A stretch of 46,357 nt of DNA from Carpediemonas membranifera BICM (GCA_019828565.1 JAHDYR010000061.1:1-46357), one strand, 5' to 3'. Counted from the stretch's first letter, positions 7,674 to 41,756 are shown. Made by a program: numbers and translations. The notes: a model not told the origin generated them from the letters alone.

Positions 7674-7747
7674 CATACTGTCAACATCCCTAGATTATCT
7701 TTGCTAAACCCTAGATTATCTTCGACCTCAAAACGCTAGATAATCTA
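7674..7747 (+). repeat. Left terminus, subfamily 2 (TAGATWATCT palindromes)
   Basis: catactgtcaa, then motifs at 7691, 7712 and 7737. Confidence 0.85.
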
Positions 7748-7930
7748 CAATTTCTTGCTCAGAAATGAAGTATTCATTAAATTTAAGCTATTTAGAGATA
7801 AACGAAGGTCTTCTTTAGAGTCCATATGATGTACGTAGAGCATGGAAAGAAGCTCTGGCTCTGACTCCTTGCCTGGTTTGAGCATTTCGCCGTGCAGGTT
7901 AAGACGAAACGATAAAATGGACAATAACAG

Positions 7931-8034
7931 AAAATCTAACAGGTAGATTCACTACGATAGTGATTATGTGAGTAGTTGAAAGGAGGTACATATGCGCATA
8001 ATCACTTTCAGAGTGAATCTACCTGTTAGATTTT
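7931..8034. other. Long hairpin (23-bp perfect outer stem plus 10-bp inner stem)
   Basis: 7931-7953 pairs with 8012-8034; 7959-7968 pairs with 7997-8006. Confidence 0.9.
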
Positions 8035-8415
8035 GAGATATGGTCGATTTCTTGTTTTTTGACTTGGCTAGAGTCGAATTGAAGAAAAGGAGAGGCTATT
8101 ACTCAGGGAATATTGCTCGTCAAAGAAAAAGCAAGCAAGGCCGCGAGGTATGGCCACCCGACCTACAAGATGGGCTGGGTGTCATCGCGTAAGGACGACC
8201 GGTCGTGCGCGGTCAACGCTGACAAAACTTAGCGATTTAGAGAAATAAATGGCGCCACCGTATTCAGCACAAGACAGTGAACTCAGCTATATGGTTTTTT
8301 CTCAGTATATTTACCCAGCGGCTGATCCCACAGTTTAAGGACGGGTATTAGCCTGCACTTTGCATGAAAAAATTCTGCCTGAACACGACCAATTGTCCAA
8401 AACACAGCATTTAGC

Positions 8416-8622
8416 ATGCAACAGGAGCTGGAAGCAGCTGCAACATCTATTCTAGACCATTCCACAACGATTACGCAGGAAATTGACGCAATAGAGGCCA
8501 TTCAGTCCCATTACTTCATAGATTCACGCTTGAACGATATTACGAGCAGTATCAGGCAAGAAACAAGAAAGCTGAACGCGATTGGTGACTCCTTTCTCGC
8601 TGCGACATTTGCAGCATACTGA
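8416..8622 (+). CDS. Small end-proximal helical protein of unknown function
   Basis: EIDAIEAIQSHYFIDSRL aligns with ELDVVYGIQRAHFIDSRI of 16361-16591, at the same position in the element. Confidence 0.55.
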   Translation: MQQELEAAATSILDHSTTITQEIDAIEAIQSHYFIDSRLNDITSSIRQETRKLNAIGDSFLAATFAAY

Positions 8623-8891
8623 CAGCCACGACACGCCATTAAGCTTACGTCAGGGAGCGCCATCGCCAAGCAAGTAAATTGAGCTGTATACGACCACCAG
8701 AGACGGACGTATGAGTCAGAACGGTGTGCTACCGGAATACGCAGGGTGTTTTGTGCCCTGTTGATTCCAGGAGCACGCTGTCCTGGGTCACACAGGATTA
8801 TCACATAATCACTGAGCAATCGGGCTCATGGTACATTGTTTCATTGGATCTATCTTCATGAAAATATGTTTGAAAAGATTCAATTGTATCT

Positions 8892-10108
8892 TTACTGCTC
8901 CGACTGTTGAACCACCGACTTGAAGTTCTCAAGGCAATCGTCACAAAGACGGATCTTGGGAATATTCACGCCGTCAATGACGACCTTCACGGCAGTGGTG
9001 CCCATACAGCCCTTGTTACCACAGAACCAGTGCCCACACATCCGACAATGATATACCGAGGCGTTCTTCTGGCATGCGAAACAAGTCTTCTCCTGGACAC
9101 AAGCCTGGCATGTGAACTTCCACGAGGCCTTCTTTCTGTTGGCTTCTTTCGTCCAGTTGGCAGTCTTTAGAACATTTCTCCGGACGAGCAGGCACGCAAA
9201 CGGAATTGTCATGAAAGTTCCTGCCGCACTCTCCACACGAGACAAACTTTGACGTGTTGAGATTGCCAACCCAGTCCAAGCTGTGGCAATGGCCGCAACA
9301 GAAGGCAAGCATCCTCTTCTGCAAGTCAAGGAGGTTCTCTCCATCATCGTCAGAGTCTGAATCTGCGGTTACCGGCCGTTCTTTGAGCTGAGAGAGATCT
9401 TCCGACATGCGCTGTGTCATGCGATGGACGTCATCGAGTAGCATGACGTCACGCTTAGAGATAGACTCAGAGGGTCGAACGGGGTCAACCTTCACCTCCT
9501 GCTTCACTTGCGGCACGGAATGGGGGATTTCTGCTGTCTTGAAAAACGTCTTCGTCCGACCAGTAAATATGTCGGGTGCCGAAAGGTCCACCAGATTAAG
9601 GGACAGAGGACGCGAATCAAAATTCTGGGGGACGTCCAGGCCAACTCTCGTGAAAATCTTCTTCATCGCGGTCAGAAGCTCCGATCGCACCGGGTTGGGG
9701 GCCCGAGAGAGGTTATGAAACACTCTCGAAGGAGCCTGATCAGAAATGCCGATGTTGCAGTGGCAAGACTGGGTTGCCCACTCCTTAACATGCCCAATGA
9801 CAAGCCTACCCTGCGATACAGCCGTGAGGGACTTGATACCATCAAAGAATGTCGGATCAGGGTGGCAGGGCTGCAAGTACACCGAGATGATGTGATTGTA
9901 GGCATTCGCCACCTTACGGACAGATAGACCAGTCATATCCGTTCCAAACACATCAACGGTGATGCAAAAAGAATGCCTTGAGCATACCAATCATGAGAGC
10001 CGACCTGCATTCGCTCTTTGCGGCGTCATTCCACCTGACCATCGGCTTGCGTTTCTGAGAGTTCGTCTCTCGGGTGTCCGGAGTAGTTCCTTCATTTCCA
10101 CGCTTCAT
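8892..10108 (-). CDS. PHD-like plus FYVE-like zinc-finger protein (two apparent frameshifts)
   Basis: The ATG 10108 frame (CRSALMIGMLKAFF) matches the paralog (CRAIFAAAMLDTFF) and shifts at a T-run near 9967. CGHC...CGECGRNFH...C, then a shift to CQAC, CFAC...YHCRMCGHWFC...C...RLCDDC. Confidence 0.75.
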
Positions 10109-10203: not shown

Positions 10204-12759
10204 ATGGCGCTTCAACTGAAGTGGAAACTGTCTAACGGATCTATCTATGCTCCGGAGGGCACTGATGACATCAATACCATCCTTTGCAGCGTCTGGCTCT
10301 CGATTGACGCAGTGGATCGCCGTATTAACGGATTTGATACCTCCAAACACCAGCAAAGGCTCGAGCTAGCCCGCATCGCGCAGGAACTAATCAATATCGG
10401 CGCTGTATCGCGTGAGGCTATTTCTAGCAATCTCTACCCAGCGCCATCATCCACTAGCATCTCAAAGGAGAAGAAGGCACACCGCTCTGGTCCCAGTCAC
10501 CTTTACGTTGGTGCATATGTTCTGCATTCTGATAGCGTCGGCCTCGAGGCAGAGAATGCTCGTCTACGAAAGCGTATTGCTGACACTGAACGTCTTCTGC
10601 AGGTGTCCAACGAGCTCAGGGCCATCACGATCGGCGTGAATGCAGTCAATGACGAGATTCACATCATGCAAGCCCTTGCACAGAGACTCAACCTTGACAT
10701 TATCAACATCAAACAGGTCACAAACCAAGTCAAGTCGCTTCAGTGCAGCATTCGGAACATCGCAGACGTTGAAACCATTGTCAAGTCGCATAGGAACTTG
10801 AAAAAGGCCCTAAAGGGCTACATACCCATGGCGATCACTCAAGAGACACGAGCAAAGAGGACGGACAAGGATCACCGCGAGTATGACCTCGACCTGATTA
10901 CCCACGTCGACGCAGACCTCGAACAAGTCAACGCTACATTCGACGGCGACGACTATAACACTGAAGTGCTCAGAGGTACGACGGTGTGCATCTTCTACGA
11001 ATCGGCAATGAAGCGAAGTGCACATTATGACGTGATGAAGAGAGCCGGTCTCAACCCGCGTCTCCAGTCTAGCGGCAGGTATTCCCATGTGCAACACGCT
11101 GAGTTTGACCTCATGCGGTACTATCGCCAGGCGGTGGCTTCGCCTATCGATCTCGAGACGTCAAGGGCTGCTCGTAAGAACGTGGGCAAGCAGTTGACAG
11201 CGCAGACTCAAGCTGAAGAGACTCAGACAGTGCCGCTTGATCTTCTCGTCTGGGTCGATGGATGGCGAGGGTTGACTACATCTGTGAAGGTTCGGTTTGT
11301 CGATATCTCCGGCAAAGTCTTCCCGTCAGGCGGAACACCACCCTTCCGCATACTCGAGTACAACGGACCAGAGAAGCGCATTGGAGAATTCTTCGACTTC
11401 ATCGAGCGCTCAGTCGAGAGTACCCATCGCGAGGCACTTGAGGTGAGAAATACCGGTCTCCTGTGCCGTGTCACCCGCGTTATGTTCATCGCAGACCACC
11501 CAGCGATGTCAAAAGTCTGTGGAACCTTGATTGGCGGCAGCTATCCCTCTCCATTCAGCTCGGTACATGCTGACAACAAGGCCTGGAGCCCATTCGGTCT
11601 CACCCCACGAAACACGATTGCAGACGTGATGTATGCGAAGAAGATGTCTGTTGAGGACAAGACAGTCCTGGATAGAGAGAAGAAGTGGGGGTCGTTCTAC
11701 AACAAGAAGAATAAGTGCATCATGCCCAGCCTATTTGAGAACTCGGATGACCCAACTCTCGATAGGGGCAAAATCTTCCTTGTCCCGCCGATCATGCACC
11801 TCAGTCATGACTTCGTCTCCTTGATACACAACATTTGTCGGATGTTCAAGCCAATTGAGGTCGACCCAGACTCTACCCCGGAGGAAATCAAGACCAAGAA
11901 GGCCAGAAACGCTGACCTCGCCAGGCTGGCTAAGTTTGAACCTCCCAGTCGCACGACTGGCTGTAATGAGCAAGTGAAGGGGAGGAAGATGATCGCGTCA
12001 ATTGGAAACAGTCTCTACATGGCATTCCCTCCCCCCGTTCAGCCACTTTTCAGACTCGTTGCCTACCTGCAAGAGCATTATTACTCTCACGAGGAGGCCA
12101 CGGATGACATTATCACCTGGCATCGACTGACAGCGTTGCTTGTTCACCTCTTTTCACTGACAATGTGTCTGAACACGACCAGCACCGTGTCGGAGTCTAT
12201 TCCAATCCGGCCGCCGTCTAAGGTAGCCAAGAAGGCTCCCTCCATCGACACACTTCATGGCTTAGCGCGAGTTGCTGTGTTGCCGGAGATTCAGTCAAAA
12301 ATCCGAGTCCCACTTGGCCGGATCATTGAGGAGTCATTCGAGCGCGACTTTATTGGCAATCAGGACAGTAGAGTACACTTAAGGCGCAACCAGATGGTCC
12401 TTGAGAGAACGATATTGAAGGAGCAGGTCGAGTTGTTTTACCGATTCCTCCGTGGCGTCGTCTCGTATGGGCGACAGTCAACAGACGTTCCCCACCAAAT
12501 ACGTCTGAAGACAATGCGCGTCCATCGCTGCTGCAAGGACGCCAAACACTGGATCCGTATTCGGAGCGAGGGCACTGGAACATTGGACGAGGGAGACTGT
12601 CAGAAACTGTTACCTCTGTTTGAAGGTCAAGTGGATGGTCTATGGAAGAAGGTGTTGAGGCAGGTAGGGCTCGTGTTTGACGGGCAATGGTTAGACATCG
12701 ATGTCCATGAGGAAGGAGAGATCTCACTGGATGTGTGCATCTGCGGCAAGTATGAGTAA
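10204..12759 (+). CDS. Putative DDE transposase (CACTA/Chapaev/Transib-RAG1-like), subfamily 2
   Basis: 851 aa. VWVDGW (D352), IADHPAMSKVCG...GGSYP (D431), PPIMH (H532) and IEESFER (E713) mirror the D, DxPA, MH and FER motifs of that group and are conserved in paralog 17897-20476. Lies near a TIR-like end. Confidence 0.7.
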   Translation: MALQLKWKLSNGSIYAPEGTDDINTILCSVWLSIDAVDRRINGFDTSKHQQRLELARIAQELINIGAVSREAISSNLYPAPSSTSISKEKKAHRSGPSHLYVGAYVLHSDSVGLEAENARLRKRIADTERLLQVSNELRAITIGVNAVNDEIHIMQALAQRLNLDIINIKQVTNQVKSLQCSIRNIADVETIVKSHRNLKKALKGYIPMAITQETRAKRTDKDHREYDLDLITHVDADLEQVNATFDGDDYNTEVLRGTTVCIFYESAMKRSAHYDVMKRAGLNPRLQSSGRYSHVQHAEFDLMRYYRQAVASPIDLETSRAARKNVGKQLTAQTQAEETQTVPLDLLVWVDGWRGLTTSVKVRFVDISGKVFPSGGTPPFRILEYNGPEKRIGEFFDFIERSVESTHREALEVRNTGLLCRVTRVMFIADHPAMSKVCGTLIGGSYPSPFSSVHADNKAWSPFGLTPRNTIADVMYAKKMSVEDKTVLDREKKWGSFYNKKNKCIMPSLFENSDDPTLDRGKIFLVPPIMHLSHDFVSLIHNICRMFKPIEVDPDSTPEEIKTKKARNADLARLAKFEPPSRTTGCNEQVKGRKMIASIGNSLYMAFPPPVQPLFRLVAYLQEHYYSHEEATDDIITWHRLTALLVHLFSLTMCLNTTSTVSESIPIRPPSKVAKKAPSIDTLHGLARVAVLPEIQSKIRVPLGRIIEESFERDFIGNQDSRVHLRRNQMVLERTILKEQVELFYRFLRGVVSYGRQSTDVPHQIRLKTMRVHRCCKDAKHWIRIRSEGTGTLDEGDCQKLLPLFEGQVDGLWKKVLRQVGLVFDGQWLDIDVHEEGEISLDVCICGKYE

Positions 12760-13164
12760 AGAACGAAAACATGATTGGTAGTTATAGATCACGAGAATAG
12801 GCATTCTCATCCGCATTGCGGAGAAAAGGAGTTGATGTTGTATTAAGAAAAGGACGAATGCATTATCAGCCATTTGAATGCATGGCTCCGAACTACACGC
12901 GTCTCGGCGTTGATATTGGTTATTAAATGCACTGCTGGTAACATATTGAGGGATTTCGTCACTGTACTCGAATGCACAAGTGTGCAGTTTATGCTTTCTC
13001 GGCCAGCCGACGATATTTACCACCACAGACAGCTGCATACAGGCTGTAGACTAGACATATACAGCAGGCTGAGTAATATAGCACCATACCCACCTACAAA
13101 CCGCGAATCAACCTCAAGGTCACATAAACATAAGCGATACGGTCGGTATATCAATCCTTTACTC

Positions 13165-14709
13165 TTACTTCTTCACTGACCATCTCCTCCTCTTCAGCCC
13201 GGGAGGAACCTTGCGCAGAGTGGCGTGTCCCCTTGTCACTTCGACCGCATACTCGATTTCCCACTCGCGACACTGTTGGGCAAAACACGCCAGGGCGCTC
13301 TGGCCGTTTTCGTTGGGCTTAAACGCGACATGTGTCACTTTGCCCTCCTCAGACTTGCTAAAAACGTACATGCCGACGACTGGATCGATCTTTGGGTCAA
13401 AATCCCGGACAACATGGAGGTATGCAACGGACTTTCCAGTCATTGAGCACCAGGCTTCAACAGCCCACTGAGTCAACCACTTCTCCTGTATGATTGGCTT
13501 ACCGATGTTGCCCTCCTCCGTGACAGTGTGTACACTGCACACTTCATGGAAAAGTTCGTCCCGGAGACCCTCCTCGGGTCGCCTGTACCCCGGAGTGGCC
13601 CGCCGGTTCATCTCTATCGCTTCCTTGTATATCTGCTCGCGGTAGTTGTCCGCCTTCGTCTCCGCTGCACACTGCTCTTCATTCGTCATCGTCTCCCAGC
13701 TCTTGAACGCATGAGGCTCCGTGACGCCCTCGATCATCATGAGGCAGTGTGTTATACAGTTGCCGTGGGGCAGGGTTTTGTATCTGACCCACTGCTTGCT
13801 CTTCTCCAGCTGATTGGCGACGTCAACTCTAAACTTGACTTCCCTGCTCCTCATCTGCTCGGAAGCTGGGTCGACGTGGTCGACCTGGACATATTCAACG
13901 TCCGACTCAGCCTCGAATGCCACCTCGTTGTCTGCCTCTTGCTCCTTATCTGCCTCACGCTTCTCCTCTGACTCTGCATTCACCTCTGACTCAGCCATCT
14001 CGTTCTCCTGCTCCTCCTCCTCTGCCTCACCCTCCTCCACTGGCTCCTCTTCCTCCTCTGACTCCTCCTCCGAGTCCTCTGGCCTGGCCTTCTCGGGCGT
14101 GATGATGAGGGCCTTGCGCTTCACAGACATGGCTGCCTGCGCCTCGTCCGTATCGCGTCGGGGACAGGAAGTCCTGGAGACTGTGCCAGACTGTGGCGGG
14201 ATGGGGCTGCATGGGAGTGATGCATCCATGGACTTGTCAGCGTCATAGGCTGCCTCTCGCTCAGCCTGCTGCTGCAGAAGGCGTCGATGCAGCGTGATGA
14301 CTTCCTCACTCTTTGCCGTCAAGCTCTTCCTCAACTGCTTGACTCTCTTCTTGTATCCTCGAACAATTTTGTGATAGTAATCGATGATAGCGCCAGTACC
14401 TGGGGGGAGCAGGGGCGTACCTTCTCCCGCGGGGGTCTCCAACCATTCCAGGGCGATGATGTACTCTTCGAAGTACGAGCGGCAGGAGTGCTTCATGTAA
14501 GCAAGGTCTGCCTCCTTGCTGCGCACCCTGGCAACCATTGCTGTGACATGGTCGCGCACAAGCGCGTTGGTGGATGTCGCGTTGCGCCACGCCCGAACCT
14601 TGACACTCAGCGCCTCTTTTTCGATACGCGCGCCCTCATTCTCCTTGGCATACTCAGCCCTCTTGGAGTTCTTGAAGGCTGTGACAGCGGCCGACTCAAA
14701 CGCCTTCAT
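13165..14709 (-). CDS. Coiled-coil/acidic N-terminus plus OTU-like protease, 5'-truncated relative to 1839-3598
   Basis: About 14052-14754 is nearly identical to 2126-2828. C-terminus TLPHGNCITHCL...YREQI...WAVEAWC...RGHAT is OTU-like but divergent. Confidence 0.75.
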   Translation of the reverse strand: MKAFESAAVTAFKNSKRAEYAKENEGARIEKEALSVKVRAWRNATSTNALVRDHVTAMVARVRSKEADLAYMKHSCRSYFEEYIIALEWLETPAGEGTPLLPPGTGAIIDYYHKIVRGYKKRVKQLRKSLTAKSEEVITLHRRLLQQQAEREAAYDADKSMDASLPCSPIPPQSGTVSRTSCPRRDTDEAQAAMSVKRKALIITPEKARPEDSEEESEEEEEPVEEGEAEEEEQENEMAESEVNAESEEKREADKEQEADNEVAFEAESDVEYVQVDHVDPASEQMRSREVKFRVDVANQLEKSKQWVRYKTLPHGNCITHCLMMIEGVTEPHAFKSWETMTNEEQCAAETKADNYREQIYKEAIEMNRRATPGYRRPEEGLRDELFHEVCSVHTVTEEGNIGKPIIQEKWLTQWAVEAWCSMTGKSVAYLHVVRDFDPKIDPVVGMYVFSKSEEGKVTHVAFKPNENGQSALACFAQQCREWEIEYAVEVTRGHATLRKVPPGLKRRRWSVKK

Positions 14710-15126
14710 CTCCTTCTCCGTGAAGGTTGCCTCGATGTTCTCGTTCGAGGTCTTGACTCAGGTATTCTGGCCATGCCTGGTACTCTCAAATCATCTATAC
14801 TGCTCTGTGGTTCATTTATAGTTCATATCGTATGGTCCTGATGGACTTATAGTTGTTGATGTTGTTTAGGGATTATTGTTGCTTTAATGATGCTCTGCGC
14901 CCGCTTACTGATGTTTCTTAGTGTTGTACACATGCCTACTACGTTAAAGCCGCCAGTATTCTTTCTATTCTTAAGTTCCTCATTTCAGTCTCGTTGCGAG
15001 CATAAAGTGCGAAATAGTGGCCAATTGGCCACTACGATATCGGCAATTAAGACAGTAACAGGAGCGTTTGGTGCGCAGATCAAGACTTTTTAACAATATC
15101 AACAAACGGTTCACTCACTTTCTCGT

Positions 15127-15202
15127 CATACTGTCAATTCCTTGACTTCAAGTCAAGTTTTTGTGACTTAAAGTCAAGGCCAAAACTTGACTTTAAGTCA
15201 AG
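15127..15202 (+). repeat. Left terminus, subfamily 1 (nested insertion)
   Basis: catactgtcaa, with palindromes centred at 15149, 15170 and 15194. Interrupts ...ctttctcgt^ttaacg, which is intact at 29113. Confidence 0.85.
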
Positions 15203-15382: not shown

Positions 15383-15465
15383 TCTGTCCCCTTCGCAGTT
15401 TTTTGCAGGATCTGATCTACACCAGTAGTGCTTGTGATCCAACAAAAATCTGCGAAGGGGACAGA
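15383..15465. other. Long hairpin (16-bp perfect outer stem); copy at 5338-5420
   Basis: tctgtccccttcgcag pairs with ctgcgaaggggacaga, with inner T/A-run and ggatc/gatcc pairing. Confidence 0.9.
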
Positions 15466-16360
15466 ACAGATCTCGAGATTTTTAGCAAAAGACTCGGGCC
15501 GAGTCGAGAGGCGTTATTGATGAGCGCACAGCTCAGGGAATTTTTCTACGCTGCAACTAAAAACCAAGAGGCCGAGTAAACACAAGTATTACTACACGAT
15601 GATGCCCAGACCGTCGTGTAAGGAGAACATTCTTGGGCGGTCAACGCGAAGAAAAAGTTAAAGTTATTGAAATTAAAAAGACGGCAATGTACTCGCCCTT
15701 GGCTGAAACCTCAGGCATAATGGTTTCAGGTGTGAACTCTTCCAATTGGGGGAGTTATTGTCATTGTTCAGGTTAAGGTCACGCCGCCTGCATGAAAAAA
15801 ATTGGTAATGACGGAAGCAATGTCGGAGATATCCAGAAATGGCTGTGATAGAGCTCATAGCAAGACAGCATTCGAGATATGTGCCCATCTGAGCATGCTT
15901 TCGCTCATTCTAGATGGCATAAGCCTCTTTTCCCACAACTAATCAATATCAAGTCGGCTTTTACTCAGTATCGCTCGCTCAGACATCTGAAACGTCCCGA
16001 TTGGCAACATAACCCTGCTGGAACAGTGAAGTGGCGAGCATAGAGTTCCATTGATGACGAAAGGTTGCGACCGGCAAGCGCCTGATTCATACGGCCATTT
16101 GGGGCGGTGCGAGAGTCAATCTCGTTAATGAAAGGTAGGATGATGCGCGTATGAGTGTTTGTAGGGTCACTAACGACCTTAATGACGAGTTAGGACGTGT
16201 GTGGCAGGGCCGTGCGCTGCCGGAATACACAGGGCAGATTCGCCCCGTTGATTCCAGAAGCTCGCCGCTCTTCCACGCACGATAGTCAATACAGGGATAG
16301 ATACACATCTGGACCTCTTTTATACAGCCAACCAGGCTCCGCATAAACTGCGCATTTCAG

Positions 16361-17855: not shown

Positions 17856-17896
17856 ATGGATCTAAAGGAGAATTTCAGTGATTTTTGGTTTACTAA

Positions 17897-21799: not shown

Positions 21800-21828
21800 A
21801 ACCTGGGAATTTGATTTATCAGTATATC

Positions 21829-22503: not shown

Positions 22504-22546
22504 TCTGAAGGACCTTTTCTGACAAAACCAAGGAACGACGAATCCT

Positions 22547-29274: not shown

Positions 29275-29652
29275 AGAGCGGCAGGAGAGCGCCGGGCGAT
29301 GGCGCACGGGAGGGAGAGCAGCATGAGAGCGCCGGGGTATGGCGCACGGGAGGGAGAGCAGCATGAGAGCGCCGGGGTATGGCGCATGGGAGGGAGAGCG
29401 GCATGAGAGCGCCGGGCGATGGCGCACGGGAGGGAGAGCAGCAGGAGAGCGCCGGGGGATGGCGCACGGGAGGGAGAGCAGCAGGAGAGCGCCGGGGGAT
29501 GGCGCACGGGAGGGAGAGCAGCAGGAGAGCGCCGGGGGATGGCGCACGGGAGGGAGAGCAGCATGAGAGCGCTGGGGTATGGCGCATGGGAGGGAGAGCG
29601 GCATGCGAGCGCCGGGGGATGGCGCACGGGAGGGAGAGCAGCAGGAGAGCGC
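29275..29652. repeat. 40-bp tandem array (about 9.5 units)
   Basis: Unit gatggcgcacgggagggagagcagcaggagagcgccgggg, no spacers. Confidence 0.95.
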
Positions 29653-31307: not shown

Positions 31308-31359
31308 CTTCGACGACGAATCAACGTTCAAATCCAATTGCCAGAATTGACACATCTCG

Positions 31360-32432: not shown

Positions 32433-32774
32433 GTGCGCTCTCCTGCTGCTCTCCCTCCCGTGCGCCATCCCCCGGCGCTCTCCTGCTGCTCTCCCTCCCG
32501 TGCGCCATCCCCCGGCGCTCTCCTGCCGCTCTCCCTCCCGTGCGCCATACCCCAGCGCTCTCATGCTGCTCTCCCTCCCGTGCGCCATCGCCCGGCGCTC
32601 TCCTGCCGCTCTCCCTCCCGTGCGCCATCCCCCGGCGCTCTCCTGCCGCTCTCCCTCCCGTGCGCCATCCCCCGGCGCTCTCCTGCCGCTCTCCCTCCCG
32701 TGCGCCATCCCCCGGCGCTCTCCTGCCGCTCTCCCTCCCGTGCGCCATCCCCCGGCGCTCTCATGCTGCTCTCC
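32433..32774. repeat. 40-bp tandem array, inverted copy (about 8.5 units)
   Basis: Reverse complement of the 29275-29652 unit. Confidence 0.95.
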
Positions 32775-33057
32775 ACCGCCGTTATCCTCCCGGCGCTTGT
32801 TTCTTGGCCGCTCACTCTCTATATTGAAGTTAAATGGTGTTTATTACTCCTATTGATGGTAATAAGGCCTCATCAGTGCTTCGCACGGCTAACAACTAAC
32901 GCCACAGCTGAAACTGATGATTCACTACGTTAAACGAGAAAGTGAGTGAACCGTTTGTTGATATTGTTAAAAAGTCTTGATCTGCGCACCAAACGCTCCT
33001 GTTACTGTCTTAATTGCCGATATCGTAGTGGCCAATTGGCCACTATTTCGCAGAATA

Positions 33058-33893
33058 ATGCAACACTTCTCTATGCTGACCACAGAGCTCGATACCTCAC
33101 CGGCGGAAGCTTTTATGGCGTATTACACGCTTAACTCACTTCAGACTGAAAGGATTTATTCGTCCTCGCTTCAGTCACTGAAGTCCCGCACCTTGTGGCA
33201 GTTGAGAAGGAATGGGCCCAGTCCCCTGCTGGGAAACAGTATTTCGAGCTTCAGTCTGACGAAAAGGTGAAATGTGCCACAAACTCGATCCCCTTCAACC
33301 TTCAGAGTGCGTGCTATTCACTAACTGGCAAAGGAGCTCTAACAGAGCACCAGATCAAGGCGGCGACGCAGATCCTCGAGCATGCGCCAATGCTCATAAG
33401 GCATTCCACTGCACTTCAGACACTTCGTATGAGTATCAACTCTTTGAAAGATGCTATGAATGCTCCGTCTAAGGTGCGTCTATCGATTTTCGATAGATAC
33501 GCGATCTACGTCGCGAAGAAGGCACCCTCACTCTATGCCTCTTGGGTAGAGAGTCTGCTGCTGGGCATCACGTCAATTGAAGAGTTAGATTTAGCCTTTT
33601 TTGTGCTGGCGAAGAGGGATGCTTCGCTTGGAGACAGGGGCGACAACGTGATTCAATTCACTGACACGCAACTAGACTATGCCATCGAGAAGGTCACATT
33701 GCCGGATGGGCAGAACGGCTCAACTTGTCGCGTGAAGTGGATAGGCTACCATAACCCTACAACGTGTCCGGCCACAGAGGAGCTGAAACGTTTTGCAAGA
33801 GAGGTGGAAGAAACGGCAGGTCCTGCGCGTGCTCACAAGCGTGCCACCAAAAACTACTTCACAGGTACTCCGAGAACATTGGCTGAACTGTAA
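33058..33893 (+). CDS. Chromodomain-like protein (frameshift at about 33150-33195)
   Basis: N-terminal LTTELDTSPAEAFMA matches LVTETSISAGEAYLA of 20996; DYAIEKV...CRVKWIGYHNPTTCP. Confidence 0.75.
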
Positions 33894-34358
33894 ATCGTTA
33901 AACAATTACGTAAAGCTTTCATGACTCCGCCGCGGCGGGGCTCTCACGACCACGCCCCTGCCGGCACTATGCTCGTTAACAAGGCCGATGTCGAGAGCGA
34001 CGATGAGTTCTTCCTCTTCTCATGGGCCGCGCCCTCTTCACCAACAAGGCCGTCCACTATCACGTGCTCGGGAACACCATTCCCCCAGCATTACCCTTCA
34101 GGACGGTGTTAATCATAACAACATTGGATCATGCAGCAGCCTCCACCGTCGCCCAGAAGCGTAGTGACCGGCATATCATCATGGCAAGGCATCCTAACAT
34201 TGGATGATATAAACGGAGCAATGGCGCATTTATCAGTTGAACCAAAGCCAAGCCTACTTCAACCTGAGCTGTAGGGTACGTTCCTGCTGTCTTTCGACGC
34301 GCGATGATCAGGCATACCCGCGAACATTTCTTTAGAATTTCGTTCTAAAGAATTCGAT

Positions 34359-35300
34359 ATGAGCACAGGCAACAAGGATTCGGCTGCATACGCTGGCATG
34401 ATGCTGGAAACGTTGTTGCGAATGGTTCCTGTGCTGAAGGAGATCATAGCAGCAAGTGGTAAGATCAATAATTCAGACGATCCTTCTGTGCTTCTATGTG
34501 CCGTTCGGAGTTGCAGAAAGGACCTTGATCGCATCAATCAACGGTACATTACGACTCTCCAGCGTTTCAGGAACGAGGCATGCCACGGTTCTGCCTCTTT
34601 TGGTGGTGAGTCATTCATGGACTTCCTGTCTGCGGTCGAAGGAGTCACGAGGCGTGTGACCACGAGGACGGGACCGGATAAGGCGTTCACTGACTTTGTG
34701 GACGATATTCGACGTGAGGTGAACGGGGGGGCGCCCAGGGTGCGGGTTCAGCCGACGAGGACAGACGCACCGCGCCAGCGTCCCGAGGAATCGTATACGT
34801 ATGGTCGTGCGCCTGTACGCACGATGCCGCCGCGTCCCTATCTTTATAAGCTAGTCACATCCCGCCAAGTCACTCAGGAGAAGACAGTCAGCTCGGATGG
34901 TCAGACACAGACAAAGGTGCCAGTCGGCTCGGATCATCAGACGCAGACAGAGGTGCGCGACCTTGAGGAGGCGTCTACACAGACTATTCACGCACGCCCT
35001 GTACTGTCTCGGCAGACAGTCGATACCGCAATGTGCGACCTGCTTCGACAGATATTGAAGACTCCGCAGAAGCCGCCGGCTGTTTTGACGGGATCATGCA
35101 TTGTGTGTGGGGAATCTGTGGCTCACACACATTGGGCATGCACGCGGGGTGGCACCGAGACGCCGAAGTATACCTGTCGTGAGTTGGTGGCGCAGGCCAC
35201 TGCCGAGGCAGTCACAAAAGGAACAAAGAAGCCGCGCAAGACACGTAAGGTGTATCTGACGAGAACTGCAGTGACCTGGCTTCACTCGCAGATGGAGTAG
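34359..35300 (+). CDS. HEPN (Swt1-like) RNase-domain protein with TQT-rich linker and C-terminal Cys cluster
   Basis: ETLLR (ExxxR), DPSVLL, FRNEACH (Rx4H); C-terminal CIVCG...WACTR...C. Confidence 0.65.
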   Translation: MSTGNKDSAAYAGMMLETLLRMVPVLKEIIAASGKINNSDDPSVLLCAVRSCRKDLDRINQRYITTLQRFRNEACHGSASFGGESFMDFLSAVEGVTRRVTTRTGPDKAFTDFVDDIRREVNGGAPRVRVQPTRTDAPRQRPEESYTYGRAPVRTMPPRPYLYKLVTSRQVTQEKTVSSDGQTQTKVPVGSDHQTQTEVRDLEEASTQTIHARPVLSRQTVDTAMCDLLRQILKTPQKPPAVLTGSCIVCGESVAHTHWACTRGGTETPKYTCRELVAQATAEAVTKGTKKPRKTRKVYLTRTAVTWLHSQME

Positions 35301-35329
35301 TAAAAGATTTGATTGATACGTTTACGGCT

Positions 35330-35992
35330 TCAGTCATTCCATCTGTCGTCAGGGGTATCCAGATCGGACAGGGAGATGGGTTTTTTCAGACTCTGCATCC
35401 CCGCTTCGTGCAAGATGCGGTTCGCGTGCCTGACTGTCATGGGGGGACTACCCCAGAGCGAATCAAGGTCCTTGGACATCCGGATAAGGGTCTCAAAGGC
35501 AGGGTGATCCACGGCAGCCTCTTGCATCAACTCCTGTAGCGCGGGTAGGTCTAAGTCACGTAGGTCTGCGACATACGATCCCAGCCGGCAGAGAGCAACG
35601 ACTAGGGCGAGCTGACGGTGGGATTCGGCAATGTCGTACTTCAGAGCTCTCGTGAGCTTGTCGTACTCCTCGTTAGTCAGCACCTGGCGTGCCGGAAGCG
35701 TGTGAGACCTTATCCTGCAAATTAGGTCGGTTTCGGCACCAGCAGTGCGAAGAAGGCGAACGAGAGCCTTTTGAGGCATCGAGATGGACTTGTACCGTCC
35801 AAAACGGCGACAGAAGGACAGAGAGTCCAGAAACTGTTCGAATACGTCACTATTTTGTCGGATCTCTGTGATAATAACAACATCAGCATCCTCATCGTCG
35901 CACTCAAGGTAAACGCACAGTTTTTGATATGTCTGCTTGTATTGCTCCTTCGTAGAGCGCTTCAGTCCCTCTAGAGCGTGCTTCAGCAGCAT
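35330..35992 (-). CDS. Tyrosine-recombinase-fold protein lacking catalytic residues
   Basis: STKEQYKQTYQKLCVYL...FEQFLDSL (core-binding-like), VLTNEEYDKL, LALVVALCRLGSYVADLRDL (GxRxxEL with R replaced by Y), PMTVRHANRILHEAGM, then ISLSDLD instead of HxLR; ends before any catalytic Tyr. Confidence 0.5.
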   Translation of the reverse strand: MLLKHALEGLKRSTKEQYKQTYQKLCVYLECDDEDADVVIITEIRQNSDVFEQFLDSLSFCRRFGRYKSISMPQKALVRLLRTAGAETDLICRIRSHTLPARQVLTNEEYDKLTRALKYDIAESHRQLALVVALCRLGSYVADLRDLDLPALQELMQEAAVDHPAFETLIRMSKDLDSLWGSPPMTVRHANRILHEAGMQSLKKPISLSDLDTPDDRWND

Positions 35993-36993
35993 TTCGATCG
36001 AGATTAAAAATCACCCGAATTCTAGCTCTGTTCTGGCCGCTGCAGGCACCGCTGGGCGCAATAGAGCTCGGAGCGGCGTTGTCTGCCAAAAATACCTATT
36101 TGCTCCCGGTGAAAATTGAACCCACGATCAGGGGGCTGTGTACAAAGTCTCTTCCCTCTATACTATGAATTATGGGAAATCCGCCCTTATTAAGCTTCCT
36201 ACAGGGAATATAGGCCATTTTGGAGGTATGAGCGACCGGGAGGGGGAGATTGGGGGACATTTACGGTATGGCTGGACTCTACTCGGGCAGACTATTATAA
36301 CGAGGCTCAGATCAGACCTCTACGGCCGCTATACGAGGAGAAACGAGCCAGTAAGGGCACTAGCGGCCCATGGCCGCAGCAGCGCCCAGCCAAACTCAGC
36401 TATAGGGTCACCTGAGGCCCCAAATGACGTGCTGATCAGGTCGACTCCCATCTATTGACTTGGTAATTGCAGAGGGCGTCTGAACGCGATGTCCTAATAA
36501 CCGACTTGGTCGGAGCGGTTCGGCGATGACTCCGTTGTATTCCACACCTTCTTTTAATGCCGAAACATGCAGTCCTTTAGAGTCAACGCGCGTCCTGTCC
36601 GTCAGGCGAAGGGCATTCAGCAGAGGCATTGCTGCGGTCTGCAGACCGCCCTAGCGCTTCAGGATGGCCAACTGCATGATCTGGACCCATGTCTATCAAA
36701 TCCATTTTGATCACATCAAACATGTGTCAAATCCGGCAAATCGATTTTGCGATAAAAAAAGGGGCAGAGGGGAGGAAGCGACCCATAAGGCGTACCTATG
36801 GACCATTTCCTCCCCCCTGCCCGTTTGTTGAGTCTCAACTCTCAATTCGAATTTGTCCCTATGTTACTTTTTTCTAGCAGGATTTAAAGTTTGATACTGC
36901 GCATGCGTATTGCTTAGGTATAGCCAAGTACTACCATACCACTTTGAAGATCCAGCTCCGGCTCATCGTCGAGTTCATTTTTTCTTGCAACCG

Positions 36994-37067
36994 TAGATTA
37001 TCTAGGGTTTTTAGGCCCTAGATTATCTAGAAAAAATCGTAGATTATCTACCGACTTTCACAGTATG
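36994..37067 (-). repeat. Right terminus, subfamily 2
   Basis: tagattatcta at 36994, 37019 and 37040, then ttcacagtatg; mirror-image spacing of 7674-7747. Confidence 0.85.
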
Positions 37068-37125: not shown

Positions 37126-38055
37126 TTATTTCTCCATCTGCGAGTTAAGCCAGGCCACTGCCTTTCCCGTCAAATATACCTTACGTGTGTCGTGCGCCTT
37201 CTTTGTTGCTCTTGCGGCTGAAGCATCAACAGTGGCCTGCTTCAACAAATCTCGGCAGCTAGACTTCGGCGTCTTGGTGCCACGTCGCGTGCAGGCCCAC
37301 TCTCTATCGTCCACGGACCCACCGCACACAACGCATGACCCTGCTAATACGATCGGTGGCTTCTCCTTCAGCTTCTGTCGAAGCAGATCGCACATCGCGG
37401 TCTTGACGACGCGTCGAGATAATTCATCCGTGCGCAGGGTACTAACAGGCTCAACCAAGAGCTCTGTCTGAGTAGACGCCTCCTCTAGGTCTCGCACAGT
37501 CTGAGTCTCTGCATGCTCACCCTGTGGCGAAAACTGCTGGCATTTTCCCACCATCCTCGGCTTATCAGGATCAGGACCCAGCGCAGTCATGTAAACAGGC
37601 ACCTCAACCCGCTTCTCGACTATCTTGACAGGCTGGGAGCCCCTGCGGGAAGGGGCTTGCGGGTGAACTCGCGTCCTGGTCGGCCCCCCGTTCGCCTCGT
37701 TGTGCAGAGCCTCCATGAAGGCATTGAAGCCGTCATCACGGCCCACCTTCTGCGTCACAAACGACATGACGCATGTGACCGACATCTCAAAGGATGCAAA
37801 ATCGTCAGCACTGGAAACATCGCGATTGTGGCAGATTGAGTTTCGAGCTGCCAACAGCTCGCGTATATGTCTCTTATCAGCGTGGTGAAGATCAGGAACA
37901 CGATGTAGGATCGCTTGCAAAAGCATAGCCGGATCCATCTCGCCACCGTCACCACGGTACCTCGCGATGTACTCCTGCAGCTTCGGAATCATCCTCAGTA
38001 GCGCTTCAAACATCATGCTGGCGTATCCTGCTGAATCCTTCGCCCCAGAGCTCAT
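37126..38055 (-). CDS. HEPN-domain protein, divergent paralog
   Basis: EALLR, MDPAMLL, ARNSICH, RDLEEASTQT, CVVCG...WACTR...C. Confidence 0.65.
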   Translation of the reverse strand: MSSGAKDSAGYASMMFEALLRMIPKLQEYIARYRGDGGEMDPAMLLQAILHRVPDLHHADKRHIRELLAARNSICHNRDVSSADDFASFEMSVTCVMSFVTQKVGRDDGFNAFMEALHNEANGGPTRTRVHPQAPSRRGSQPVKIVEKRVEVPVYMTALGPDPDKPRMVGKCQQFSPQGEHAETQTVRDLEEASTQTELLVEPVSTLRTDELSRRVVKTAMCDLLRQKLKEKPPIVLAGSCVVCGGSVDDREWACTRRGTKTPKSSCRDLLKQATVDASAARATKKAHDTRKVYLTGKAVAWLNSQMEK

Positions 38056-38315
38056 ATCGGTTTCTTCAGAACGAAATTCTAAAGAAATGTTCGGTGGTAA
38101 GTGAGATCACTGCGCGTCTAGAGACAGCAGAAACGTAACCTACAGCCCATATTGATGTGGGCTGGGCGTTGCTTCAACTGATAAATGCCACATTTCTCTG
38201 TTTACATGGTAAGGTAACACGTGAGTGCTTTGTACTGGCATACTTAAAGGCAAGGTAAGGTTGGCGGACGTAGTATCACCCGTGGCGCTTGACCATCACT
38301 CAATCAGACAGATAT

Positions 38316-39022
38316 TTATTTCTTCGTGGATACCTTGTCGAAGAACTGCAATGCCAAGGTCAACTTGCCTTCCTTCGTTATCTCTTTGTCGGTCAGCAGT
38401 GTCTCGAAGTCAGCGACAACGAGAGGCCGGCAAGCAAAGGGGTCAGCCCAATAGTCATCTTCGTAGGCGACCGAGAGGAACTCAAACGGACGAATGTCAA
38501 CGCTTGCTTCATATACAATGACAGGCAAGACTGCATCCTCCACACAAACATGGCACAGAAGAGCACTGACATTGTGGTACTAAATAATTGGGGGAGAGGC
38601 ATGTTACAAACAGCAGAGTTGTCGTTCACCGTGTGGACTCCAAGCTTGCCCATCAGTGAAGACGCATCCATCGCGAACTTCGTCGTGCCAACGCGAGTGC
38701 AGTACGTGGGGTCATCCGGCTGGAAGTCGATCAGTCGGCCGCAGTACAGGCCGATGATGCTCTTCGCAGGGATTTCGGCACGAGACGCGATGCCCTTGCC
38801 AGCGGTGCCTCCGTATAGCGTGCGCTGATCAGTCATGTACAGCTGTACGCTCTTGGAGACACCGTTGGCCGCTATCGTGATGTCCCGGTCCAGGAACGAG
38901 CTACCCTCCTGCTTCCAGTCAATATCCTTCAAGTCTGCCGGTATTTTGTCAAACAGCAGCTCATAGTCATGACGAGACATGCTAGAACCCTCCGAGGGGA
39001 TTACGATCGTTTCTTCCGACAT
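38316..39022 (-). CDS. SET-domain protein (frameshift at about 38550-38600)
   Basis: GKGIASRAEI...GLYCGRL, HTVNDNS...CN; second frame LPVIVYEASVDIRPFEFLSVAYEDDYW. Confidence 0.8.
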
Positions 39023-39440
39023 CGTTCTCAGAATTCGACCCGTTTATAAATCAATAATAAGCAAGCTAAGCTGCAGCTCAGGCACCCTCCATGCGCTCGT
39101 TCCCTGGCATCTTGGCCCGCGGCCTCTTCAGCGGCGTTTCGGCCCCTCTCGTAAATCGAGAGGTCTTCTTGATGTTGTTACTGTCTCTGTGCTCCCATTG
39201 CTTGCCAGTCTCATTGTAGTGTTAAGTTAGTGCCAAATGGTCTTTATTGCTGTTCGCTCGCATTAATACGGAAGAGAAAGAATGATGATGTTGATTAGCT
39301 TGCGGGGAAAGGCATTACCAAGCATTTGACGCGCACAACCTGCTTAATACTGCATAAACGCATCGCTGATCGCTTTCTCTTCTGTTCTTCAACGCCCAAG
39401 GAGCGGCTTCCAGGTCGGCAACCGTTGCCGACCTGGACCC

Positions 39441-40451
39441 GTGCAGTATATGCTTTTTCGGCCAACCGACGAAGTCAAGCTTGGCCAAGACACATACTGT
39501 GTACACGGACCCTGGCAGGCTAGTTACGCTGCTCAGACTATGTCTGGAGACGTTCGGCTGGGCTCTGCACGGATGGAAATGAACACTATCACGTCAAGCA
39601 CCCAACAGCAAGAGACAACGGCTTTTAAGGAAGCTTTTGAGCTCTTTATGGACAAGTACTCGCTATTCACAATCAGTAGGCTTAACGATGGCGAGAATAA
39701 CGGTAACACAGCCAAAATCAGGGCCGATGTCCGCAGCTCGTTCTTTTCCGCTTGGCTATGCACTCAGTGTGGCAGTAAGTGGATGATGGAGAGAACGAAC
39801 AGCCTTCTTGTGTCGTTCTCGGGCTCTGTGGCAGTCGACATTCAGACGACAGTCTTCGCAGGTTTCGGTGCTGGTGATCCGTCGTCAATGTCGATCGACA
39901 CCACCCTCGCACTGCTCAAAGACGTGCAGGACTTGGTTGTTTGGTGTGACATTGCTGCTAAGGTGAGGCGCATGAGACTACCGAGCGACAAGGTCAGGAA
40001 GGCGTGCATTACCATCGCACCGACGAGTGTGGCCAAGAGGGCTTACGCAATCGTCAGCCATCCTACTGCTTTCACGGTCTGGTGGGAGCACTATGCCCTT
40101 CGCAAGATTTCTCCTGAAGTCTTCAAGGACTTTATTGACTGGGCCAACTTTACGAGCACAGCCGATCTCGTCACTGGAGAGGTGACTGCTGTCCAGCTCA
40201 CTGACACTGTGATACACTATGCCATAGACTCTATCTCCAAGTTTGAGTCCGGCTATCACCTCACCAAGTGGGAGGAGCCGTGGGTGACCAGAACTTGGCA
40301 TAAACCGTGCGAGGCGACTGCAGACGCCAAACAAAACAATCTGGTCGAAAACAAAACTACTCGCAGCTGGTATTGTCCGCAGCCTTCGCCTCAGGCTCGA
40401 AAGCTGTTGGAGCAGTTTACCCGTAGCTCCTTTACTCGGTTTGGTAAGTAA
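39441..40451 (+). CDS. Chromodomain-like protein, divergent paralog (start uncertain, ATG 39540 or later)
   Basis: KRAYAI...PTAFTVWWEH...QLTDTVIHYAIDSI...YHLTKWEEPWVTRTW aligns with DRYAV...PSTYSVWMEH...QFTDTKLQYALEKV. Confidence 0.7.
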   Translation: MQYMLFRPTDEVKLGQDTYCVHGPWQASYAAQTMSGDVRLGSARMEMNTITSSTQQQETTAFKEAFELFMDKYSLFTISRLNDGENNGNTAKIRADVRSSFFSAWLCTQCGSKWMMERTNSLLVSFSGSVAVDIQTTVFAGFGAGDPSSMSIDTTLALLKDVQDLVVWCDIAAKVRRMRLPSDKVRKACITIAPTSVAKRAYAIVSHPTAFTVWWEHYALRKISPEVFKDFIDWANFTSTADLVTGEVTAVQLTDTVIHYAIDSISKFESGYHLTKWEEPWVTRTWHKPCEATADAKQNNLVENKTTRSWYCPQPSPQARKLLEQFTRSSFTRFGK

Positions 40452-40475
40452 CACTGATAAATCAATGGATATAGT

Positions 40476-41756
40476 TTACTCGTCAGGCTCTTCGACCTGA
40501 GGAACTGCCCCAGTTGAGACAACTTCCTCATCAGCTGTTCCAATCGCCTTATAAATGACAACTCTTCTGTCATCGCCCTCAAACTTCTTCTGGATGAGCG
40601 TGGTGAGGGACGAGTCATCCTCGGCAGGGGTGTCAAGCAAAAGATTCTTCAGACCAACATCCATGACAACGTTGGTGTAAGCGATGGTGTCAGGCAGACA
40701 GTGGCTCGAGAGCAGGTCCCAGAAGAGATTGGGGAAGAGAATCATGTATCTCACCACGAGAATATAGTGTCGCGTGACGGTCCCAGGGTCGATGAACAAC
40801 ATCGTTGCCATGGAGTCACAAATCGACTTGACCATGCCGGCGTACGTCGCCCTGTAATTCCACACCTTCCGAGTTCCATCGATAAGTTCTCTGGTGGGTC
40901 GCATCAAGGCCTCGCTAACCCTAGCCTGCAGTACCTCCAGCTGCTCGGTCGGGACGATGCAGTCGTCGATGGCCACACCGTCATTCTCCAGCTCATTGTA
41001 GAGCTCCATCTGATATGCCACCCATGCGATGTTGCAGATGCGCTCGACACTCTGGACCCTCTCATTCCGAATGACCGACTTCAGGTCCGACTTGGATATA
41101 AACTTCAGCTCCCTGGCGCCGGCTGCCTCAAGCTTGGTGGAACTAGCCCACGAGCTTAGGAACTGCTCCACATCAATCTCACTGGTAAGGAAAGGAAGCT
41201 TGCGCTTCGGCGCCTTGGCGCGGGCAGTGGGAGTGATGGCGGATGCGGATGCACCAGTGTCGGCGATGGCCACAGACGAGCTACCAACAGAGCCAGAAGA
41301 AGCTGACTCGGCGAGGGACATGGAAGGGACAGCCGAGCGGGTGCCAGAGCACGGGTCATCCGCTGAAAGCTGTCTGGCAGCAGAACCGGTGGGAGATGGG
41401 CCGGCGAGGGATGTAGCGGCGTCGCCAGCTGCGCGCCTGGCTGCGCGCAGGGCTCGGTCTGAAGGCTTGGCAGGAGAACTAGAATCGACTTGCTCTGCGC
41501 AATCGGCGGAGCGAAAGCGCTTTTCAGCAGGTTGCGGAGCTGCCTTGCGCACAATGAGCTCTTCGCGTACCGCTAACACGTTAGAATCTGGAACAAGCTC
41601 AAGAGCGGCGCGGAAGAGCTCCTCGGCACGTCCACGGGCGGAATCGTTGAAACGGTTGACAACGAGAACCGATTTCTCAGATAAATTGTCCCGTCGCATA
41701 CGATACGACGTACCAGTGAGGCAGTGAAGCTCCTGAAGCATGTAATTGCTTTCCAT
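40476..41756 (-). CDS. Unknown family E, divergent paralog
   Basis: IDVEQFLSSW, IAWVAYQMELY, VRYMILFPNLF...CLP. Confidence 0.7.
   Translation of the reverse strand: MESNYMLQELHCLTGTSYRMRRDNLSEKSVLVVNRFNDSARGRAEELFRAALELVPDSNVLAVREELIVRKAAPQPAEKRFRSADCAEQVDSSSPAKPSDRALRAARRAAGDAATSLAGPSPTGSAARQLSADDPCSGTRSAVPSMSLAESASSGSVGSSSVAIADTGASASAITPTARAKAPKRKLPFLTSEIDVEQFLSSWASSTKLEAAGARELKFISKSDLKSVIRNERVQSVERICNIAWVAYQMELYNELENDGVAIDDCIVPTEQLEVLQARVSEALMRPTRELIDGTRKVWNYRATYAGMVKSICDSMATMLFIDPGTVTRHYILVVRYMILFPNLFWDLLSSHCLPDTIAYTNVVMDVGLKNLLLDTPAEDDSSLTTLIQKKFEGDDRRVVIYKAIGTADEEVVSTGAVPQVEEPDE

Follow-up and report, generated by a model that had tools for sequence, protein, structure and literature searches.

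A RAG1-like DNA transposon lineage with putative chromatin-type cargo genes in Carpediemonas membranifera

A 46,357-bp contig of the metamonad Carpediemonas membranifera BICM (JAHDYR010000061.1; the whole 46-kb contig is the window below) holds two open reading frames (ORFs) of about 850 amino acids amid genes that resemble SET, OTU, PHD and other chromatin-type genes. What kind of element would gather such genes? The original prediction, made from the window alone, answered with a giant transposon at 7674–41756, bounded by terminal inverted repeats (TIRs) and managing its own chromatin state or insertion targeting. We compared the window with the whole genome (24.2 Mb, 69 contigs), searching split-frame genes piecewise with their frames kept apart; the main text of the paper that describes this assembly does not mention transposons (PMC8516963). 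The copies found point to cut-and-paste DNA transposons that would form, within the RAG1/Transib/CACTA (CMCT) fold group, a lineage not yet described.

Element ends and target duplication

Copies of the family have sharp common ends and unrelated flanks (about 30 + 16 + 10 copies). They start exactly at CATACTGT, the end motif that the original prediction had singled out for a genome-wide search, and carry 75-bp inverted repeats 9–21 kb apart; for the subfamily 1 end there are 10 more matches of exactly 75 bp, several of which face a left end at that distance. Examples of TIR pairs are C1:1466101-1481214 and C6:1054150-1068847. Within the window CATACTGT occurs nine times, against 0.96 expected. 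Four of these are true ends: 7674 (+), 15127 (+), 37067 (−) and 5676 (−). The five matches at 39493–45538 (39493 plus 1096-bp units) were rejected as ends; they have no TIR body, their flanks are fixed and they are internal look-alikes in a repeat unit.

The TIRs define three subfamilies, which have in common only the first 8–10 bases and the spacing of internal palindromes. Element 1 (from 7674) and element 2 (from 15127) had been given one shared blueprint. The small ORF, the hairpins and the PHD/FYVE-type gene lying head-to-head with an 851- or 859-residue ORF are indeed common to both. The three terminal palindromes are not: they are perfect or near-perfect in element 2, and only one of three TAGATTATCT-type units in element 1 passes the same test. 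The window as a whole draws on three subfamilies.

The target duplication is 2 bp. A complete 11.63-kb relative with 74-nt TIRs (L063, in GCA_002919055.1) lies inside a gypsy pol gene, flanked by GC on both sides (GC/CATACTG...CAGTATG/GC); the duplication follows from the fact that the RNase H frame is restored only by removing the element and two bases. In C. membranifera itself, a copy on C19 is interrupted by another CATACTG element with a 3-base overlap, which indirectly gives the same value, as a 2-bp duplication plus the terminal G. Element 2 sits inside element-1-type cargo, the empty form of which is found at 29113/29114 and 32934. Left-flank dinucleotides show no strict target. Other mobile DNA holds several of the insertions (gypsy in the case of 7673 and L063; nests in that of C1, C19 and C62) and most of those in the window. 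Many genomic copies are 98–100% identical with open frames, and by this measure the family is recently active. A complete subfamily 3 copy lies at C1:552596-578545 (16.7 kb without a nested subfamily 2 copy, calculated from coordinates alone).

The ends also show exchange and further diversity. Subfamilies 2 and 3 have 97%-identical subterminal DNA next to different 75-bp TIRs (L013:1-719, that is C1:573386-574104, and window 36350–37067), which suggests that TIRs were swapped onto a common end segment. Starts with CATACTGT and unrelated bodies (L049:978 on C19, the one in L049 inside a subfamily 1 copy; L059:2998) imply further subfamilies. In L011-L022 (subfamily 3) the PHD–transposase block is inverted relative to a left-end segment held in common (82%) with subfamily 1, and the non-autonomous copies L032-L040 are chimaeras of subfamilies 1 and 3.

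A RAG1-like transposase

The two long ORFs were expected to have an RNase H-like fold with a DDE triad, and a predicted structure of the 851-residue protein agrees: its best match is RAG1 (Foldseek E = 9e-9), with Transib next. VIA-align gives Z scores of 13.4 for RAG1 (over 449 residues), 12.5 for the P element and 9.1 for Transib, and Atlas matches of the model are to DUF1280, RAG1 and Transposase_21 clusters. Searches of Pfam and of Protein Data Bank (PDB) sequences with the transposase gave no match. Its relatives number 17 among 1.8 billion representatives, and those that could be traced come from C. membranifera, GCA_002919055.1 and metagenomes. The transposase of the third subfamily is 60% identical to that of subfamily 1.

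Conserved in the alignment are W-x-D352-G-W, A-D431-H, M-H532 and E710-x-x-E713, with the triad residues at least 90% conserved; we take D352, D431 and E713 to correspond residue for residue to the RAG1 triad. Extra parts are predicted at the N terminus (ferredoxin-like) and at the C terminus (Cys/His). Zinc motifs are half kept: S-P-F (YPSPF) in the window proteins and C-P-F (YPCPF) in relatives. The C(2)C and H(3-4)H motifs of CMCT transposases are incomplete in the segment from the second D to the E, where there is one His before the PE motif and no second His. The model supports assignment of the 850-residue ORF to RAG1/P/Transib-type DDE transposases. The part of the original prediction that foresaw a large TIR transposon with such an enzyme therefore stands, on paired TIRs, sharp ends, the 2-bp duplication and the fold. 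Mobility is evident from the genomic comparisons; the DDE chemistry is predicted from the fold.

Cargo genes and selection

A chromatin writer, reader and eraser together with an RNase had been proposed as cargo. Among these, the writer is strongly supported as a predicted SET-fold protein from sequence (a five-sequence family profile matches EHMT1/G9a with E = 5e-12; copies keep GxG and the terminal YG, and NH reads ND). The PHD reader is moderately supported, a paralog of the 8892–9990 gene in another genome matching PHD_4 (E = 1e-4), and so is the OTU eraser, with a predicted fold and a Cys and a His that do not vary among five copies, which come from three genomes. The remaining two assignments are less firm. 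The chromodomain, the other proposed reader, is weakly supported: the three cage residues of the copies are Y, W and F/Y, the protein at 20996–21799 has no Pfam or Atlas match, and its sole PDB sequence match, 4quc, is a protein we take to be a chromodomain. Identity as a HEPN RNase is weakly to moderately supported, by HEPN_Swt1 matches (E = 0.001–0.008) under the Pfam cut-off and an Rx4H motif in both paralogs.

The further cargo includes a protein with a tyrosine-recombinase (YR) fold. By eye, its catalytic tetrad R-H-R-Y is absent (the first R is Y, HxxR reads SxxD and there is no Tyr helix), and it has no PF00589 match; the window copy was rejected as an active recombinase. Family E has no Pfam match. 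Homolog searches with the YR-like and family E proteins found nothing but the window's own protein, and the search with the chromo-like one added a single C. membranifera protein. The expectation of two to four diverged paralogs per family held for SET (three), chromo-like (three and a fragment), HEPN (two and a duplicate) and OTU (two); the YR-like gene is present once with a decayed copy, and the three family E proteins are only 19–24% identical and unlinked by BLASTP.

The cargo in relatives comprises SET, OTU-like, PHD, a GNAT acetyltransferase, a kinase and a protein with, by eye, caspase-like HG and C motifs; standard subfamily 1 copies have a kinase with a Cys-rich tail. PHD-, SET- and OTU-type genes also stand beside the transposase in GCA_002919055.1 and in an environmental metagenome. 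The PHD gene is head-to-head with the transposase in most lineages (the window, L068); in L063 it is at the far end. Around the closest SET subfamilies we could ask whether cargo occurs independently of element ends, as in ordinary subtelomeric gene families. This explanation was rejected for them: of the 33 closest SET copies, 26 have a transposase or TIR marker no more than 20 kb away, and such vicinities make up at most 11% of the genome.

In all seven paralog comparisons, from five gene families, the nonsynonymous rate (dN, 0.2–0.9) is below the synonymous rate (dS, 0.65 to saturation). Because dN is well below dS, the cargo genes appear to have been kept as proteins over long times; the comparisons show purifying selection at the level of sequence.

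Four side observations concern cargo. Near right ends of subfamily 1, the 3′ end of the YR-like gene is repeated in tandem every 1.23 kb (C6, C42 and C50). Across the genome, Phage_integrase matches that pass the Pfam cut-off number about 97, and many of them lie in long frames; these are probably tyrosine-recombinase retrotransposons and a possible source of recombinase in trans. The HG/C protein is conserved at about 330 residues, its motifs like those of caspase/CHAT proteases (L063:8643-9647, L064:7977-8957 and L065:2172-3152); it has no Pfam match in the two copies scanned and is absent from the window. A short ORF at L064:3999-4370 starts with MARSKQPARAAP, which resembles a histone H3 tail and may be a histone mimic.

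An internal core where copies exchange flanks

Copies of element 1 are 98–99% identical up to 12995 and then abruptly continue into three different sequences. The switch falls at an 11-bp imperfect palindrome, GCANTTTATGC, with the inverted repeat GCA-N5-TGC. The window has this core 12 times, where 0.16 copies would be expected; both orientations occur, and every copy lies in intergenic DNA or at its edge. Genome-wide, 265 cores are linked to recognizable arms (165 with right arm C and 100 with right arm B), and both controls gave none. Left arm A is followed by B in the window and by C in L002; left arm G by B in the window and by C on C1, C6 and C24, so that all four combinations exist (A/B, A/C, G/B and G/C). 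Arm C is found behind at least six unrelated left arms, D, E and F among them. Three left arms end in strong hairpins. L063 has three copies of an intergenic hairpin between convergent genes, two ending GCAGTTTAT and one cut off at GCAGT. Compared across these copies, flanks are shown to be exchanged at the core, between gene blocks.

Of 70 distinct match ends, five lie within 4 nt of a core, with 0.3 expected. Once the two junctions that defined the motif are set aside, three of 68 still do so (P, calculated by hand, about 0.002), a value that the intergenic background would weaken further. Core junctions share 11–14 bp; the other junctions are deletions with microhomology of 0–4 bp. Helitron ends or a nested CAC-ended element were considered as a source of the core, and the flanks show no consistent target or duplication. 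The 1096-bp tandem was rejected as proof of cassette amplification, since its junction is at a 14-bp array and 338-bp direct repeats explain the tandem.

Three further observations touch the core. In subfamily 3, a 2.8-kb block lies between two inward-facing core-C arms (C1:557781/560601, C6:187039/189787, C24:18309/21129, C26:1040345/1043162 and C32:4792/7612). A second switch point, CATTTGA, lies about 105 bp upstream of the core (window 12800–12881 and 42010–42086), where common DNA passes into arm A or G. There is also an inverted core-like copy within arm G.

The window as a nest of partial copies

As a single unit, the span 7674–41756 does not hold up. It was rejected because its TIRs are unmatched, its flanks differ and its parts come from three subfamilies. 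Read against the genomic copies, the window is a rearranged nest: it holds four or more nested, incomplete copies of these subfamilies, none with both ends (Table 1), and family DNA extends beyond that span, at about 1180–5676 and 41879–46357. The ends at 15127 and 37067 were also tried as a pair and rejected: their TIR bodies differ, the flanks are GT and TT, and the empty site continues otherwise. The flank of the 37067 end agrees with neither left flank (GT or GG versus TT). The 1.75 kb behind that end is inverted relative to other genomic copies. From about 33 kb onward there is subfamily 3 DNA, then four 1096-bp units to the contig end. The deletion of the 1180–5676 copy (16748 to 20435 in element 2) recurs in at least 11 genomic copies. 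We take the frame at 7335–7673 to be gypsy on the known motif LLDSGA. The element 2 PHD/FYVE protein is 32% identical to that of element 1, with synonymous sites saturated.

Two kinds of simple repeat were also seen. GA-rich tandem arrays (12/52 bp and 40 bp) adjoin hairpins within elements at 24034–24195, 29273–29652 and 32435–32774; by analogy they are candidates for VANC-like binding arrays. CAA and GAATG microsatellites, at most possibly telomeric, lie at the contig start (56–175).

Table 1. Positions of features in the window, with strand and supporting evidence
Feature	Position	Strand	Evidence
Internally deleted, transposase-less subfamily 2 copy, inverted relative to element 2	1180–5676	−	Self-BLAST; end at 5676; two-domain OTU gene inside
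OTU-fold domain, GDGDC Cys motif, C-terminal His	2852–3598	+	Model pLDDT (predicted local distance difference test) 69; top 22 VIA-align matches all OTU, Z 5.1–7.5
Element 1 target: aspartic-protease region, gypsy-type pol gene (presumed)	7335–7673	+	Frame with LLDSGA stops at 7673/7674
Subfamily 1 left TIR, 75 bp, opens with CATACTGT	7674–7748	+	About 30 genomic copies begin at same C, flanks unrelated
Long subterminal hairpin, element 1	7915–8050		+241 to +377, −62 kcal/mol
Small ORF, element 1	8416–8622	+	25% over 72 aa to element 2 small ORF, E 7e-4
PHD/FYVE-type zinc-finger gene, element 1, two frames (frameshift or intron)	8892–9990	−	FYVE E 8e-5
Subfamily 1 transposase, 851 aa, predicted triad D352, D431, E713	10204–12759	+	Alignment; model pLDDT 80
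Core GCAGTTTATGC, A/B	12984–12994	+	14 genomic matches end at 12995; arms vary between copies
OTU-like gene, 5′ part shortened by 0.7-kb deletion	13165–14709	−	PHGNC motif without usual Asp
Core E/C, inverted relative to 12984	15000–15010	−	3 genomic matches end here
Subfamily 2 left TIR in element-1-type cargo	15127–15201	+	16 genomic left ends and 3 lone 75-bp matches
Hairpin, element 2	15383–15465		At +256, −48 kcal/mol
Core just upstream of element 2 small ORF	16341–16351	−	Motif search
PHD/FYVE-type gene, element 2, 438 aa	16539–17855	−	FYVE E 1e-3
Subfamily 2 transposase, 859 aa	17897–20476	+	Sequence comparison; 39% identical to subfamily 1
Core variant ending TGG, F/C-like, 85 nt past transposase stop	20562–20572	−	Motif search
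Protein with C-terminal chromodomain-like segment, aromatic cage Y/W/F	20996–21799	+	Sole PDB sequence match 4quc, E 1.4, to this segment
SET-domain gene, frame intact	21829–22560	−	Pfam SET E 2e-4
Family E protein	22547–23674	+	Weak alignment to 30000–31421 and 40476–41756
14-bp tandem array, 72 copies, part of elements	24501–25522		Repeat and genomic comparison
Decayed YR-fold gene copy, stop codons	25835–26101	−	Sequence comparison
Inverted duplicate (99.7%, recent) of 33346–35320, joined to core-C arm	26966–28943	−	Self-BLAST
Core E/C	28987–28997	−	Motif search
Family E paralog, 78-bp internal repeat	30000–31421	−	Alignment
SET gene, frameshifted near 31850	31360–32020	+	Pfam/sequence comparison
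Core variant GCA-N6-TGC, left arm E with different right arm	33050–33061	+	Sequence comparison
Chromodomain-like paralog	33195–33893	+	47% identical to 20996–21799, dN 0.55, dS saturated
HEPN-like gene, Rx4H motif RNEACH, C-terminal Cys cluster	34359–35300	+	HEPN_Swt1 E 0.008
Tyrosine-recombinase-fold protein	35330–35992	−	Atlas feature score 0.97 to integrases; about 20 close genomic copies
Subfamily 3 TIR	36993–37067	−	97% identical to TIRs in L011-L022, beside third transposase subfamily
HEPN-like paralog, RNSICH	37126–38055	−	HEPN_Swt1 E 0.0014; dN 0.60, dS 2.1
SET gene, subfamily 3, two frames	38274–39022	−	Sequence comparison
Distant chromo-like gene (+, to 40451) and family E gene (−, 40476–41756)	39441–41756		Sequence comparison
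Core G/B, opens unit of about 2750 bp with chromo-like and family E genes	39443–39453	+	Sequence comparison
Four tandem 1096-bp units, each one core and acidic ORF, to contig end	41879–46357		Similar runs on C21, C67, C68

Comparison with known transposons

P elements make 7–8-bp duplications and have a THAP domain, and Transib makes 5-bp duplications. As structural matches to the enzyme described here, the P element and RAG1 tie, and CAT begins the ends here as in the P element; the 2-bp duplication sets it apart from the latter, and Pfam finds no THAP domain. RAG1, with Transib and ProtoRAG, remains the best structural match; the present family differs from these in the 2-bp duplication and CAT (not 5 bp and CAC) and in degenerate zinc ligands, and no partner like the kelch protein RAG2 of ProtoRAG/RAG was seen.

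The CMCT clade, which includes EnSpm/CACTA, Mirage, Chapaev and Transib as well as Plavaka, ESTA and Lanisha, is characterized (PMC12730594) by CA..TG ends, 2–5-bp duplications and the C(2)C and H(3-4)H motifs. The present family agrees in its CA..TG termini, its TIRs, a duplication within that range and model matches to RAG1, Transib, DUF1280 and Transposase_21. It differs in its half-kept zinc motifs, in an element size of 9–21 kb and in its many cargo genes. The transposase could be linked to the described CMCT lineages neither through Pfam nor by sequence, and the CATACTG end is absent from the lineage termini given in the available text (PMC12730594). Since CA..TG ends and a 2-bp duplication are present and the zinc motifs are half lost, the enzyme probably works like a CMCT transposase and fits no named lineage. 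PlavakaB comes close in CAT-starting ends (CATCA), 2–3-bp duplications and a possible epigenetic enzyme cargo (TET/JBP); it is fungal, retains C(2)C and H(3-4)H and carries other cargo, and no sequence similarity was detected (PMC12730594).

Transposon-borne chromatin or anti-silencing genes have precedents in HarbingerS and oomycete MuDR, which are known to carry SET genes, in TET-carrying fungal transposons and in VANDAL/VANC (PMC12730594, PMC5735166). These carry one such gene type each and belong to other transposase superfamilies; the present elements combine, in reshuffled form, SET, OTU, PHD, chromo-like, HEPN-like, GNAT, kinase and dead YR genes. The original prediction had not recognized this combination among the precedents, and we likewise found no report of it in the literature searched. 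The YR protein resembles the ZMYM-type DUF3504 proteins, which are Crypton-derived, catalytically dead and proposed as DNA-binding regulators (PMC13465315), in having a YR fold without the R-H-R-Y tetrad; those are host genes, whereas this one is transposon cargo and resembles phage-type integrases.

Discussion

We propose that the 850-residue enzyme binds subfamily-specific palindromes in the 75-bp TIRs and cuts at the common CATACTG ends, making a 2-bp duplication. Each subfamily would carry a PHD-type gene near the transposase and a changeable chromatin-type set under purifying selection: SET, OTU, chromo-like, HEPN-like and dead YR genes, with GNAT, kinase and caspase-like genes in relatives. 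The cargo proteins would most likely act on the element's own chromatin, keeping it expressed and mobile, a role to which we give slightly better than even odds. In the reading we prefer, the core would be a putative protein-binding or gene-end site, its repetition making it a recombination hotspot. It may, by analogy, bind an element protein as VANC does a short motif repeated across the non-coding parts of VANDAL elements (PMC5735166); the dead YR is a natural candidate for the binder, since dead YR folds serve as regulators elsewhere (PMC13465315). We give the whole account of family, cargo and core a probability of about 0.6. Several observations weigh against it. Within C. membranifera the 2-bp duplication is seen indirectly, from the C19 overlap, and the chromo and HEPN assignments come from weak scores. 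The NH motif of SET reads ND in C. membranifera copies, distant SET subfamilies are near markers in only about 30% of cases (with a marker list that covers three subfamilies), and several cargo copies in the window are split or truncated.

The core admits two other explanations. As an ATAAA-type 3′-end or promoter signal, with exchanges made by microhomology-mediated repair and filtered by selection for whole genes, it would account for the GCATAAA on its reverse strand, for cores 85–170 nt past the stops of four genes and followed by a hairpin, and for the position of the L063 copies between convergent genes. Other cores are found in 5′ regions or immediately upstream of a start codon, which no one polarity would explain, and the conserved arms of 10–45 nt exceed what a poly(A) signal needs; we regard this explanation as possible, at somewhat less than even odds. 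Alternatively, the core could be a true site-specific recombination site at which cassettes are inverted, added or dropped, by a recombinase that acts in trans or comes from an active subfamily. Bacterial shufflons and integrons offer the comparison: in these, a number of short asymmetric sites lie between gene blocks and point either way, and flanks are exchanged. Here, too, there are multiple short cores with exchanged flanks, in the arm combinations, the GCA-N5-TGC repeat, the clustering of match ends, the long junction overlaps and the L063 hairpin copies described above; the OTU block stands in both orientations among copies, the number of core-to-core units varies, and the element encodes a YR-fold protein in a genome with many Phage_integrase matches. 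Yet that protein has no catalytic residue and is the only YR found in the element parts read, so that switching is hypothetical here. The clustering test is partly circular and intergenic breaks are favoured anyway, inversion and copy-number changes are explicable by 115-bp and 338-bp repeats, and a variable base falls within the putative overlap region. An enzyme-driven site is thus unlikely, and a lineage that keeps a working writer, eraser and reader kit as cassettes reshuffled by such recombination, an idea drawn from the same analogy, is more doubtful still.

The cargo could instead serve targeting or host manipulation, with the transposase tethered through PHD and chromo proteins to silent, repeat-rich chromatin, and host silencing factors or RNAs acted on in trans by SET, OTU and HEPN proteins. 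The PHD gene's place beside the transposase, the insertions inside other mobile DNA and the best SET match, the repressive H3K9 enzyme EHMT1/G9a, all accord with this. Clustering in repeats also follows from selection against genic insertions, however, a distant best match gives no lysine specificity and the left flanks have no strict target, and we hold such a role to be rather improbable. That the cargo consists mostly of captured pieces of host genes, hitch-hiking as in Pack-type elements with no role for the element, would suit the many split or truncated copies and the fluid gene order. But paralogs with saturated synonymous sites retain open frames and catalytic motifs, dN below dS speaks against it, the same functional classes occur in three genomes, and the homolog searches with the YR-like, family E and chromo-like proteins found no close homologs outside elements; we consider it very improbable.

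The family is thus a recently active, deeply diverged relative of RAG1, Transib and CACTA, seemingly without the zinc-binding motifs of the clade, and bears on how this fold works and evolved. The core suggests a route by which cargo is swapped between subfamilies and, if it were enzyme-driven, would be part of a system of a kind undescribed in eukaryotes in the literature searched. The chromatin-type gene set is the broadest that we found on one eukaryotic transposon lineage, the precedents found carrying one such type, and it therefore makes counter-silencing by transposons testable in a metamonad.

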